From assembly GCA_964187785.1 (NCBI GenBank), contig OZ076412.1, positions 25,048,001 through 25,112,000 on the forward strand: DNA of 64,000 bases. Direction: 5' to 3'. This stretch comes from Amphiscolops sp. MND2022 (taxonomy: Eukaryota). This document shows, piece by piece, positions 33,989 through 64,000 of this stretch; positions within the stretch are counted from its first letter, which is position 1, and each line of letters begins with the position of its first letter. The position numbers were made by a program, and so were the translations under genes. The notes under the pieces were generated by a model that searched no databases, was not told the DNA's origin, and saw nothing but the letters and a program-made list of their open reading frames with translations.

Positions 33989-34263
33989 GGTACCATATTT
34001 GCAGCCAAGTGGTCAAGTAATGGTGGACTTAATGCTCTGGTATCAAAGTGACTTGCTCGATGTCACAAAGGTCTGACTGCTCACCGTTGCCCTTTTTATT
34101 TTTTCATTTCTCCTCCAAATGCGTTATTTTCGGTCACTGACCATGCCACTAAGCTAGGCATGAAGGACTTGCTTAAAGCTCAACAATGGTGAGTTGAGAG
34201 AGATTCGAACCTGTTATCGCCCCAGTTCAGGACAAATGCTCTAACCACTACACCATGCTCCCC
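33989..34263 (-). mobile_element. tRNA-derived SINE-like element
   Basis: Minus strand reads GCATGGTGTAGTGGTTAGAGC (A-box) ... GGTTCGAATCTC (B-box); body shared with 1901-2020 and 55657-55826; acceptor stem does not close. Confidence 0.65.
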
Positions 34264-35848
34264 TACTATACCATGCAAAATCGCATTTTGCAAACAAAAT
34301 CCCTCTCACCTAGCTGGTAAGAGAGTTGGGTAGGTAACTAAAGGACTGTCGCTTTGCTGCTGAGAATATTGGAGTGGCTATCAAAAAACTGCAGTATCAT
34401 GATTATAAAAATTTATATGGTCAAACAAGTGGCCTTACAATATAATTTCAGCTGACGTAAATTTAATAAAAATTTGTTTTTAATTTCGTTTTTTTTTTGA
34501 AAAATTATTATCAAGCCGGCAATGCCACTATTTCAATTTTAAGACGGTGATGCTTTGCGTAAGCAAGAAATGTATTGTAACGATGAATGACGTTGAAACC
34601 TCGAATTTTTGTCAAAACAAGGTACGTAAACAAAAAATACAGCTATCTCAGCAACGATAGCAAATTGATCTTTCTATGACATCTACAGAACTTGTTTTGC
34701 GTTCGGGGGCTTGGGAAGATCTCTGGTGTCGACCTTCACAATTTTATCATGTGTTGGAAAATTAAAAACGTAGTTCAACCACCTTTCAATGTTTCGTTCA
34801 CTGACGTTAATTTCACTAAATTGTTTATATAACACAAATGAATGCTTTAATCATCGTCGAATTTAATTTGACCAACTTAAGAGACTAAATAATCATCGAC
34901 TCAAGACTGTAAACTTCAAGAAAAACTGCTCTAAAGATGTATTTGATTTTCATTCAAGTTTTTGCATTTTCGCATTTTCTTACTTTTTAGTCACGAATTA
35001 AATTTGAATATTCACATTTGAATTCTACGAAATTAGCGCCGGACTTGATTGAATTGAAGGCTTGCAAGCCTTGAGCGCTTGGTTGAATCCATTTGAAAAG
35101 GTAAATGCCGAGATAACAAAATTTCTATTCAAAAGAGGCGGTCAATCTGTTCGCTTTTCATTTTAATTGACCGAGTTCATCTGACAGCTATTCATAAATT
35201 ACCTTCTTTGGAAATTCACTCTGAAGTTATTTTCATCAGCAATGCAAAATAATTAAGAGCTTCCGATGTTACAAAAAGTGAATTTGAAAAACGTATCGTT
35301 TCAAATCGACTTTTCGTAACATCGGAAGTTCGTAATTATCTTGCATTACTGATGAAAATATGCATATTTGCATTCATTGCCCGAATAAACCCAGTATTCT
35401 GCGTTTTAAAAAGAGACTGAACTTTTTTTTTCAAATGATCTTCATGCCAACACTTTTTATTTCTAAGGATAAATAAATCTTACTGAAGAGACAAATGTTT
35501 GCAAATTCCTGAGACGGACAAAAAATGATCTGGTCACATTAAAACCAATCTTGGGACGAATTTTTTGGCCAAGTTTCAAGGGTAAAATTATGATGGAAAA
35601 CAGTAAATTTCCATGCAAACAAAAATTTAAAAAGAATGTCTTGCAATTGGCCGTTTTGTCACTTCAGGTTTTTTTGTGTCTCCCAAAACTGTAAGTATAG
35701 CCTTCATACAACTAATAGTAAGTAAACTTGGTAAATTGGGTGTGACAGCGGATAGAGGAGATAAGGTTCAAGACTATATATAGAAATTGAAGTCCAAGAA
35801 AAATTGAATTATTCTGAATAGTGAAATCCTTTGAAGAATTTGTTTTAC

Positions 35849-36383: not shown

Positions 36384-36883
36384 AACAAGACGGGAACGTC
36401 TAAAGTCGGCGCCATATCTAAGGCTCAAAAAGCGCAAAAGATTTTTTTTGGAAAAAAACTGAAATTTTTGAAAATTTTTTTTTCTTTCAAAAAAAGTCGC
36501 ATAGTGCCGAAAAATGTAAAAGGGGGACCCTTCTGGATTTATTAACATACATTCCGTTGCAAAATATCAAAAAACTCGAAGGGGGGACCCTTTGGGGACA
36601 AAAAAAATTTTCGAAAAAAAGTCGCACAGTGCCGAAAAAAACTCAAAGGGGGGACCCTATAGTCTCATCCTGTTTTGTATCTTACGATAAAAATGGACTT
36701 ACTGAAAGGGGGGACCCTTTGCACTATCTCAAATGCGCTGCCAGTATTTTAGTAGTACTGTAATTAGTAGTTTAACGTTAATTTAAACGTTCGTCGCTTC
36801 GAGTCTGTCTTAAATAAAAAAAAAAGAAAAAAAAACGAGTGACTGTAATAGTCGGGCTCTTTTCTTAAGAAAAGCGCCGACTA
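36384..36883 (-). mobile_element. Complete ~500-bp HINE-A (non-autonomous Helentron-like) copy
   Basis: Stem-loop AGACG-GGAA-CGTCT plus subTIR AGTCGGCGC at one end; hairpin TAGTCGGGCTCTTTTCTTAAGAAAAGCGCCGACTA at the other; absent without TSD from units B-D. Confidence 0.8.
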
Positions 36884-61100: not shown

Positions 61101-61451
61101 TTGAAAGGGCGATCTTTGGAATTTTTTAACATCCATTCTGTTGCAAAATATCAAAAATATGAAGGAGGGACACTTTGGAGAAATTGAAAAAAATCTTTCG
61201 AAAAGTCACACAGTTTTCAGACGAAACCTGAGAATTTGGAACAGTCTCATAGTCCCGCAAAATGTTAAATGGTTAAAGGGGATCCTTTGAGATTTTTTAA
61301 CATCGATTTTGATGCAACACAAGACGAGAACGTCTAAAGTCGGCGCCATATCTAAGGCTCAAAAAGCGTAAAACACTTGTTTTGGAAAAAAATTGAAATT
61401 TTTGAAAAAAATTTTTCTTTTAAAAGAAGTCGCATAGTGCCGAAAAATGTA

Positions 61452-61736
61452 CACAGAGGCGAAGCGGTGCTTCGCAACACATGACGAAGACGATTATTTT
61501 AATATGCGTATATATATTATTTTAATCGCATGCGTATATATTCTACAGTTCAACTTTGTTCAATAACGTCCCTATGGCACAGTGGTCAACACATATGCCG
61601 TGCAATCGGGAGGCTGCAGGTTCGAATCTCTCTGGGGTTTTGGCTTTATTCTAAAAAGCGCTCATTATGAAGTTGACTATTGTGGAAAAAAAACTTTCTT
61701 AGCTGGACTGCAATGCACATTGACTTCGTCATGTGC
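61452..61736 (-). mobile_element. 285-bp second Helentron-like element (HINE-B) nested in HINE-A
   Basis: 12-bp inverted repeats CACATGACGAAG (61478) / CTTCGTCATGTG (61724); stem-loop GCGAAGC-GGT-GCTTCGC; interrupts AAAAATGTA|AAAAGGGGGACCC without TSD. Confidence 0.7.
61570..61640 (+). ncRNA. tRNA-like Pol III promoter segment (degenerate, not a functional tRNA)
   Basis: A-box TGGCACAGTGG 61575-61585 and B-box GGTTCGAATCT 61619-61629, 33 nt apart; anticodon stem does not pair. Confidence 0.55.
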
Positions 61737-64000
61737 AAAAAGGGGGGACCCTTCTGGATTTATTAACAAACATTCCGTTGCAAAGTATCAAAAAACTCAA
61801 AGGGGGACCCTTTGGGGACATTAAAAAATTTTCGAAAAAAAGTCGCACAGTGCCGAAAAAAATCCAAAGGGGGGACCCTTGAGGCACGTCCGGTTTTGTA
61901 TGTTTCCTTGAAAAAGTAAAAAATGAAAGGGGGGACCCTTTGGAGTAAAGTTTGCCTTGGGCGGACTTGGCCTCAGGTGCTCTGCTCAGGATTGTAAAAA
62001 GTGGACCGATCAGTGTGAGGATTGTAGTCTGAAAAAAAGGTCACTGCTATAGTCGGGCATTTTTCCCTTAAGGGAAAAGCGACGACTAAAAACACCCTTT
62101 GGTCTCGTTCGGTTTTGTATGTTAAGATTAAAAAGGAAACAAGACGGGAACGTCTAAAGTTGGCACTATATCTAAGCCTCAAGAAGCGCAAAGTTTTCTA
62201 AATATACTCAGGACGTATTCATGAAAAGCTTTGAAAACACTTTCGAGACACCCAAAGTGTGCCTTTCATGCTCGATATGACTGGAAAATCACTGTTTCCC
62301 GACTGGGAACGAAATTTTAAAAATTTTTTGAAAAATTTTTTTTTGAAAAAAAACTTCGAAAATGTCGCATAGTGCCGAAAAATGAAAAGGGGGACCCTTT
62401 GGGATTCATTAACATACATTCTGTTGCAAAATATCAAAAAACTCGAAGCGGGGATTCTTTTGAGACCTTAAAAAATTTTTGAAAAAAATTTTGCACAAAG
62501 CCGAAAAAAATTGAAAGGGGGGACCCTTTGCTCTCTTCCGGTTTTGTAGGTTACGTAAAAAAGGTAAAAAATGAAAGGGGGGCCCTTTGCACTAAGTTTC
62601 CATTGGCCTGACTTGGCCTGAGTAGTCTTATCAGTTTCTGTAAAAAGTGGTACATACGCGATGAGCTCTGTGGTCTGACGAAAAAAAAAAGAAAACAAGA
62701 CGGGAACGTCTAAAGTCGGCGCTATATCTAAGGCTCAAAAAGCGCAGAGTTTTCTAAATATGCCCAGATGTATTCATGAAAAGCTTTGAAAACACTTTCG
62801 AGACACCCAAAGTGTGCCTTTCATGCTCGATATGACTGGAAAATCACTTTTCCCGACTGGAAACAAAAAAAATTTTGAACATTTTTTCAAAAAAACTTTT
62901 TTAATTTTTTTGAAAAAAACTTCGAAAACGTCGCATAGTGCCGAAAAATGAAAAGGGGGACCCTTTGGGATTCATTAACATACATTCTGTTGCAAAATAT
63001 CAAAAAACTCGAAGCGGGGATTCTTTTGAGACCTTAAAAAATTTTCGAAAAAAATTCGCACAGTGCCGAAAAAAAATTGAAAGGGGGGACCCTTTGGAGT
63101 CTTCCGGTTTTGTAGGTTACGTAAAAAAGGTAAAAAACGAAAGGGGAGACCCTTTGCAGTAAGTTTGCATTGGTGGAACTTGGTCTGAGTGAACTTATCA
63201 GTTTCTGTAAAAAGTGGTACATACGCGATGAGCTCTGTGGTCTGACGAAAAAAAAACTAGCCACTGTAATAGTCGGGCTTTTTTCCTTAAAGGAAAATGC
63301 GCCGACTAAAAAACTAGCCACTGTAATAGTCGGGCTTTTTTCCTTAAAGGAAAAGGCGCCGACTAAAACTGAAAGAGGACCCTTTGCACTAAGGTAGATG
63401 CGTTTCCGTTGTCCGGACTTGGCGGTCTAGTAGTTTAGTTATTTTAGTAGTTTCTGTAAAAAGTGGACCTTTCAGTGTGAGGTCTGTAGTCAGGAGAAAA
63501 CAAAAGAAAACGAGAACGTCTAAAGTCGGCGCTATATCTAAGGCTCAAAAAGCGCAAAACAATTTTTTTGCGACAAACTTGAAATTTTCGAAAATTTTTT
63601 TCTTTCGGAAAATGTCGCACAGTGCCAAGGAATGTAAAAGAGGGGACCCTTTTTGATTCATAAACATGCATTCTGTTGCAAAATAACAAAAACCTCAAAT
63701 TTTCGAAAAAAAAGTCGCACAGTGCCGAAAAAAAAGAAAAGGGGGGACCCTTTAGTCTCGGCCGATTTCGTAGGTTACGTTAAAAAAGTAAAAAATGAAA
63801 GGGGGACCCTTTGGAGACAAAAAAAATTTCGAAAAAAAGTCGCACAGTGCCGAAAAAAAAATCGAAAGGGGGGACTCTTTAGTCCCGTCCGGTTTTGTAG
63901 GTAACCTTGAAAAAGTAAACAAGCCGGGAACGCCCCAAGTCGGCGCCATATCTAAGGCTCAAAAAGACTCGAAAACCACTTTTTCTACAACTGGAGACAA

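Follow-up and report, generated by a model that had tools for sequence, protein, structure and literature searches.

The closest described counterparts of the short repeat analysed here are the non-autonomous Helentrons (HINEs) of the HINE/DINE-1 type (Thomas et al., 2014; PMC4067079). Like them, our element has subTIRs of 12 bp, of which the 5' one contains a nested inverted repeat and the 3' one is followed by a stem-loop, as well as an internal tandem duplication; it also inserts into oligo-T or TT with no duplication and with a few T of its own, and it coexists with a Rep-helicase-endonuclease relative in the same genome. It departs from them in carrying a tRNA-like cassette with A and B boxes, tRNA being unmentioned in that description, and in that no partner with identical subTIRs was found for it. 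Cg_HINE of the Pacific oyster (PMC7492417) has a comparable design, with a subTIR of 11-12 bp, an inverted repeat of 7-12 bp lying 1-12 bp away, a 3' palindrome and T-rich insertion with no duplication. However, the oyster elements contain satellite-like arrays and microsatellites and tRNA goes unmentioned there as well, whereas ours holds only a two-copy 26-bp repeat together with the tRNA-like cassette. Canonical Helitrons belong to the same rolling-circle superfamily and also have a 3' hairpin and no target duplication, but they begin with 5' TC, end in 3' CTRR and insert between A and T, while the present element has subTIRs, a CTCTGTG tail and T|T insertion. Its ends and flanks, read directly, show none of the three canonical features; a Helitron1 was therefore discarded, and ends and target of this kind place the element in the Helentron/Helitron2 type.

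Pieces of small-RNA genes have also been described inside LTR retrotransposons. Cassandra, Helenus and Ajax carry small-RNA-derived Pol III pieces with conserved boxes that plausibly serve to produce the template RNA (PMC10886601), and Helenus/TRIMp3-type elements were reported from several animal phyla, including bivalves (Kojima, 2024; PMC10886601). Like Helenus/TRIMp3 and Cassandra, our repeat is a mobile element other than a SINE that holds a decayed small-RNA-gene piece with Pol III boxes; in contrast to those LTR retrotransposons with their conserved boxes (PMC10886601), it is a DNA rolling-circle element in which the boxes are followed by an immediate stop and show no extra conservation. 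tRNA-derived SINEs also present A and B boxes at tRNA spacing within a short high-copy repeat, but here the cassette is internal and antisense, a LINE-type tail and a target duplication are missing, and the ends are of Helentron type. Our search of the literature, which was incomplete and leaves such an absence unproven, yielded no description of a tRNA-like cassette in Helitrons or Helentrons.

Considering the evidence given below, we regard it as probable that the repeat is a 287-nt, protein-less rolling-circle HINE, moved in trans by a related Helentron that encodes a deubiquitinase or by an unsampled sibling of it, and that its tRNA-like cassette is cargo.

Bounds, copy number and ends of the element

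In the window (the whole stretch of DNA analysed, 64 kb long), the copy lies on the minus strand at 61452-61736 and is nested inside a copy of the HINE family that dominates the window. In 30 fetched copies conservation falls sharply at both ends, being at background directly beyond CACAG... and ...GTGC. A search of the source organism's own 1.07-Gb assembly gave 1,495 candidates, and each of the 40 scored matches is full-length, with an identity of 97-100%. Counted as exact patterns over the whole genome, a 32-mer of the left terminus is present 1,931 times and one across the B box 1,490 times. The repeat is a sharply bounded, young, high-copy element with roughly two thousand copies; it has no coding capacity and its ends are conserved throughout the family, as required of a HINE. 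An earlier note on this DNA, made from the letters alone, had proposed a second Helentron-like family beside the dominant one, and this proposal holds, the family being non-autonomous and of the Helentron rolling-circle type.

The ends and the A/B boxes, which were expected to occur together if the design was real, do so genome-wide and at a fixed distance. Among the matches listed on contig C1, 65 of 100 exact termini have an exact module at the family distance, the spacing between terminus and module being 137-155 nt (mode 149) in 54 and 182-184 nt in 7. On the same contig, again among the matches listed, 23% of the exact modules lack an exact terminus, a figure that gauges loss by point mutation alone; once this loss is allowed for, at least about 85% of the family members carry the module, and some 12-15% of the termini may be without it. 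As a separate observation, termini of the 285-bp family are regularly spaced, at about 1,207 bp, in genome C1:36168224-36171844, and those of the sister family, at about 1,040 bp, in genome C8:60561362-60567619. Taken from the coordinates alone, the regular spacing at both places suggests tandem arrays built of these elements.

Read on its sense strand, the minus strand of the window, the element opens with a hairpin that contains the 5' subTIR. A T8 run comes next, then the tRNA-like cassette and the TA-rich duplicated stretch, and the 3' subTIR is followed by the 7-bp stem-loop and a short tail. The 5' terminal hairpin (61715-61736, minus strand) has a 3-nt loop and consists of the 5' subTIR at 61724-61735 and a nested inverted repeat with one bulged T; the autonomous element described below has an identical 5'-end layout at L049:1035-1055. 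The T8 run, as read on the sense strand, occupies 61686-61693 (minus strand), about 44-51 nt from the 5' end, and a matching T8 run is found in the autonomous lineage about 38-45 nt from its own end. The TA-rich unit of 26 bp is repeated in tandem 2.0 times at 61493-61541 (TRF period 26, 88% matches), and a 3-bp indel located just before it (after 61491) is polymorphic, in 11 of 29 copies. Within this duplication, ~30 nt upstream of the tRNA-like start, the motif TATATAT at 61535-61541 is a possible TATA-like element. The 3' subTIR of 12 nt (61478-61489, minus strand) is a perfect complement, 12/12, of 61724-61735. It is followed on the same strand by the 3' stem-loop at 61459-61475, with a 7-bp stem (arms 61459-61465 and 61469-61475) and a 3-nt loop, and by the terminal tail at 61452-61458, CTCTGTG on the sense strand, which is the same in the autonomous copies (L050:5236-5242 and, in reverse complement, L045).

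When folded as single-stranded DNA, the two terminal hairpins have energies of -7.5 and -7.3 kcal/mol; compared with shuffles, z is about -2.7 and both beat about 99% of them; for the 3' stem-loop at 61459-61475 the values are -7.5 kcal/mol and z -2.8. The 12-bp subTIRs, the bulged end hairpin, the 7-bp stem-loop beside the inner subTIR and the TA-rich duplicated stretch had all been recognized in the earlier note, and each of them was recovered in our analysis. The region to the right of the element is also rich in repeats, with a 57-bp unit present 2.1 times at 98% identity at 63251-63368 of the window.

The autonomous relative and proposed mobilisation in trans

An element that encodes no protein would need a Rep-helicase-endonuclease protein supplied in trans. 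We found at least 150 Helitron-type Rep matches in the genome, belonging to several lineages; in one cluster, located at 73-76 Mb of C1, the open frames are long (about 2,370-2,390 codons), and a high-scoring group has frames of ~1,320 codons. Two autonomous Helentron copies were recovered, of about 12-14 kb and 99% identical to each other (99.25%). One of them extends on the plus strand from L049:1035 to L050:5242, which corresponds to genome C7:53236035-53250242, and the sister copy is located on the minus strand of C4 (L046/L045, reverse-complemented). The autonomous Helentron encodes a ubiquitin hydrolase (UCH deubiquitinase), a Helitron_like_N Rep and a PIF1 helicase, and it has a weak, below-cut-off match to Exo_endo_phos; UCH, Rep and PIF1 together with the weak endonuclease match make up the protein set of a Helentron. 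The longest uninterrupted frames of the two copies have 1,421 and 1,709 codons, so that both look broken in comparison with a full polyprotein.

At its 5' end the autonomous element shows a host T and then a subTIR nested in an 8-bp hairpin, and at its 3' end a subTIR, TT, a 7-bp stem-loop, CTCTGTG and a host T. The 285-bp element has this same grammar when it is read on the minus strand of the window, and for this reason the minus strand is taken as its sense strand. The likeness is closest at the 3' end, where stem-loop and tail match the autonomous lineage in 25 of 26 nt. In three fetched loci another repeat ends with these 26 terminal nt, apart from one difference in the loop, and they were also present in 2 of the ten 20-kb regions around Rep matches from different lineages; one of the ten regions contained only a nested copy of the 285-bp element. 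The subTIRs differ between the 285-bp family and the autonomous lineage, and both arms change in concert. The published rule asks members of one family to have at least 11 identical subTIR bases, and by it we are dealing with two separate families with a common 3' terminus. Almost every copy of the terminal hairpin in the genome is joined to one of two subTIR types, that of this family or that of the autonomous lineage, and a genome-wide pattern detected only 27 copies with another base at the first position after the hairpin.

All the structural features by which HINEs are recognized are present in our element, namely subTIRs (about 11-15 bp by the rule), a 3' palindrome, a 5' inverted repeat and T-rich insertion. 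With exact patterns, and among the ~150 Rep matches listed, no autonomous partner with at least 11 identical subTIR bases was found, and none of the sampled Rep lineages has the ends of the 285-bp family. Patterns that combined exact ends with a foreign neighbour returned 71 variant 3' ends, none of them within 10 kb of the Rep matches listed, and only 2 variant 5' ends, with no autonomous candidate beside a Rep match. We consider it more likely that the related lineage cross-mobilises the element than that a partner was lost or left unassembled.

The tRNA-like cassette

The tRNA-like segment lies on the plus strand at 61568-61640 and is antisense to the element, since the sense of the latter is the minus strand. 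With default settings ARAGORN found no tRNA in the whole window; at 80% thresholds it called the segment, with broken D and T stems and an anticodon loop of 8 nt. Rfam returned no tRNA family and only chance matches, either at E<=10 on the module or at E<=1 on 1.2 kb, and the RNA fold of the segment is no better than that of shuffles (z -0.45). A tRNA gene was ruled out on the basis of ARAGORN at default, Rfam at E<=10 and the fold, and the segment is best regarded as a decayed tRNA. It contains an A box, TGGCACAGTGG (61575-61585, plus strand), at position 8 and a B box, GGTTCGAATCT (61619-61629, plus strand), at position 52, which are the canonical tRNA positions, so that the boxes are correctly spaced as had been noticed from the letters. 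The 64-kb window contains a single such pair, where chance alone would give 0.01. A T4 run read right after the segment (61638-61641, plus strand) may function as a Pol III terminator. By sequence alone, tRNA-spaced boxes plus oligo-T are what a Pol III type-2 promoter unit displays. Boxes at 8 and 52 followed by T4 could let Pol III produce from the cassette a transcript of about 75 nt that runs toward the 5' end of the element, and the predicted transcript would end 95 nt before that end.

The origin of the cassette as a captured tRNA or SINE head, which the earlier note had suggested, could not be traced, and neither the capture nor the use by Pol III or TFIIIC proposed there is supported by the evidence so far. 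The module core never appears in another sequence context of the genome: one genome-wide pattern gave 0 hits in foreign context and another gave 2, both apparently small deletions. A BLAST search for a donor in 362 kb returned only a 17-nt match around the B box, at 34197-34213 of the window, within another tRNA-like piece. This other piece with A and B boxes (34150-34273, minus strand) is probably the head of a SINE. Nor does the cassette look like a private capture by the 285-bp family, as the related autonomous Helentron and its ~1-kb derivative hold a cassette of their own at the same distance from the 5' end. A scan for A/B boxes in 362 kb located in the autonomous element a different tRNA-like piece that is in sense orientation, spans about 92-176 nt as counted from the 5' end and has a T8 run directly behind it; the cassette of the 285-bp element lies 96-169 nt from its 5' end. 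The non-autonomous derivative of ~1.0 kb with the autonomous-type cassette was found in L009 (1962-2976, minus strand), L007 (870-2162) and L015 (711-1996). The copies in L007 and L015 each host a nested 285-bp element at different sites, so that each provides the empty site of the other.

Two further observations were made in these regions. A 100-bp tandem unit (97%) at L049:1151-1351, in the autonomous 5' region, starts inside the cassette and repeats the half with the B box together with the T run. At L045:2186-2275, outside the Helentron copy, a tRNA-like A box is embedded in a perfect palindrome of ~20 bp and a B box follows.

The presence of a cassette at the same distance in the autonomous relative and in its derivative makes it look like an inherited feature of the 5' region. 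However, the two cassettes are unlike apart from the boxes and have opposite orientations, and these differences in sequence and orientation mean that simple inheritance is no explanation. The occurrence of unrelated cassettes, in opposite orientation and at the same 5' distance, in two related families is thus unexplained, and there is a modest chance that the slot matters. A possible explanation may be that a Pol III/TFIIIC unit is a working part of the Helentron clade: a slot located ~95-175 nt from the 5' end would be kept occupied by such a unit and refilled with differing tRNA-like pieces in either orientation, and the unit might hold chromatin open at the 5' terminus or give rise to a small RNA. 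The rolling-circle transposon of this clade would then recruit TFIIIC/Pol III for its own benefit and seed thousands of sites. We hold both the slot and such a benefit to be rather unlikely. Two families with a common 3' terminus do carry unrelated cassettes at equal 5' distance, with intact boxes and then a T run, and all 40 scored copies of the autonomous 5' region, in the full-length and in two shorter forms, keep their cassette. Against this, a DNA transposon requires no RNA intermediate, tRNA-like pieces are common (roughly one per 40 kb in the 362 kb scanned), and the module varies like neutral interior sequence while the termini are conserved.

This last point derives from 29 independent copies, a small sample picked for likeness to the copy in the window. 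Variable columns number 3 of 61 in the termini (p=0.004 versus the rest, Fisher), 14 of 74 in the tRNA-like segment (p=0.86 versus the rest of the interior) and 31 of 150 in the rest of the interior, the termini being 4-5 times less variable than the interior. The boxes themselves are altered in single copies, with 3 of 11 columns variable in the A box and 4 of 11 in the B box, which also speaks against a slot kept in working order. In agreement, the exact 32-mer of the module is rarer in the genome than that of the terminus (1,490 vs 1,931), even though the terminus holds more CpG sites. A module as variable as the other interior sequence argues against a role in the spread of the element, and ends that are conserved in lineages that kept transposing, while the cassette is not, fit with cargo. 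Hence our preferred reading of the cassette, that it most likely travels as cargo of the 5' region of the Helentron lineage and would be dispensable for transposition.

The RNA runs, seawater metatranscriptome contigs with small shares, cover the element, mainly at its ends, with a likeness of about 90-99%; they give no strand, starts or ends and may come from DNA. Contigs of 63 nt over 61568-61630 were considered as transcripts and rejected, being best read as bubbles of the assembly graph. Close relatives (about 90-99%) are present in the seawater runs X1 and X2 and in the X9 contigs of a second organism (B). In the seawater contigs the same ~39-nt ends are also found attached to other sequences, which indicates that the family or its kin exist beyond the source assembly.

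Insertion behaviour and the place of the family among mobile elements

Helentrons insert at TT, leave the target unmodified and own 2-5 T at the boundary, in variable number (PMC4067079; PMC7492417). Among the 29 independent copies of our family, 28 have A at -1, and positions +1 to +5 read AAWAA, with A in 27-29 copies at four of the positions and with A in 22 and T in 7 at +3. As many copies nest in other repeats, a comparison with empty sites was possible. Nine filled sites were compared with paralogous empty sites, and in most of them the joined flanks are longer by exactly two A. The copy in the window is flanked by AAAAA at 61737-61741, the first two A of which are extra with respect to the empty sites (TT on the sense strand), and a paralogous empty site at 36479-36555 (plus strand) has 93% identity over the joined flanks. 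At this site, genomic contigs from the source organism leave out 287-288 nt. The two extra A and these omissions lead to a mobile unit of 287 nt on the minus strand, either 61451-61737 or 61452-61738, the placement being ambiguous inside the A run. The insert of 285 bp given in the earlier note thus stands as the bounds of the conserved sequence and not as the unit that moves. Its insertion at A|A with no target site duplication stands too: apart from the two added A, nothing is duplicated at the target. Insertion is into oligo-T, with no true target duplication, and two T come along with the element.

Inside a homopolymer, two bases brought by the element are indistinguishable from a 2-bp duplication. 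The two extra A are consequently as well suited to a cut-and-paste MITE that duplicates a 2-bp AA target, a reading we find very unlikely for reasons that come from the ends. The inverted repeats are asymmetric, one of them terminal and the other 26 nt inside behind a stem-loop, and the very ends have only about 4 nt in common; the end design and the terminal 26 nt recur on an element with Rep, helicase and endonuclease, and variable numbers of T at Helentron ends are documented (PMC4067079). More improbable still is a tRNA-derived SINE, that is, a Pol III-transcribed retroposon copied by a LINE enzyme, which would account for the A and B boxes at tRNA spacing and for the A run that follows the copy on the plus strand of the window. 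The tRNA-like part is internal, starting 116 nt inside the element and not at its head, and the T4 stop lies 95 nt before the end, so that a Pol III transcript could not span the element. Moreover, every copy has both ends exact and none is truncated at the 5' end, the subTIRs and hairpins are common to a Rep-helicase element, and there is no target duplication of variable length. A SINE was discarded on these grounds. Finally, the reading in which one SINE or tRNA fragment entered the window copy alone has practically no chance of being correct, as the module is present in 40 of 40 scored copies and in ~1,490 exact 32-mers at a fixed distance from the terminus, and neither of the two outcomes that the earlier note had named as contrary to its reading, a single-copy element or other copies without the tRNA-like part, was observed.

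In SINEs and in some LTR retrotransposons, Pol III pieces from small-RNA genes make the RNA that gets copied. Here a piece with Pol III boxes rides on a DNA transposon, for which no RNA copy is necessary, and is scattered over the genome in about two thousand copies. As far as the evidence goes at present, the cassette behaves like neutral cargo, and the practical value of the finding therefore concerns mainly repeat annotation, where the copies belong filed as Helentron-type elements and not as SINEs or tRNA pseudogenes. The unrelated cassettes at a shared position in two related families also raise the question of whether the transposon benefits from them. Furthermore, if even a fraction of the copies bind TFIIIC or are transcribed, the family would supply Pol III sites in large numbers, and effects as insulators or on chromatin would be possible.
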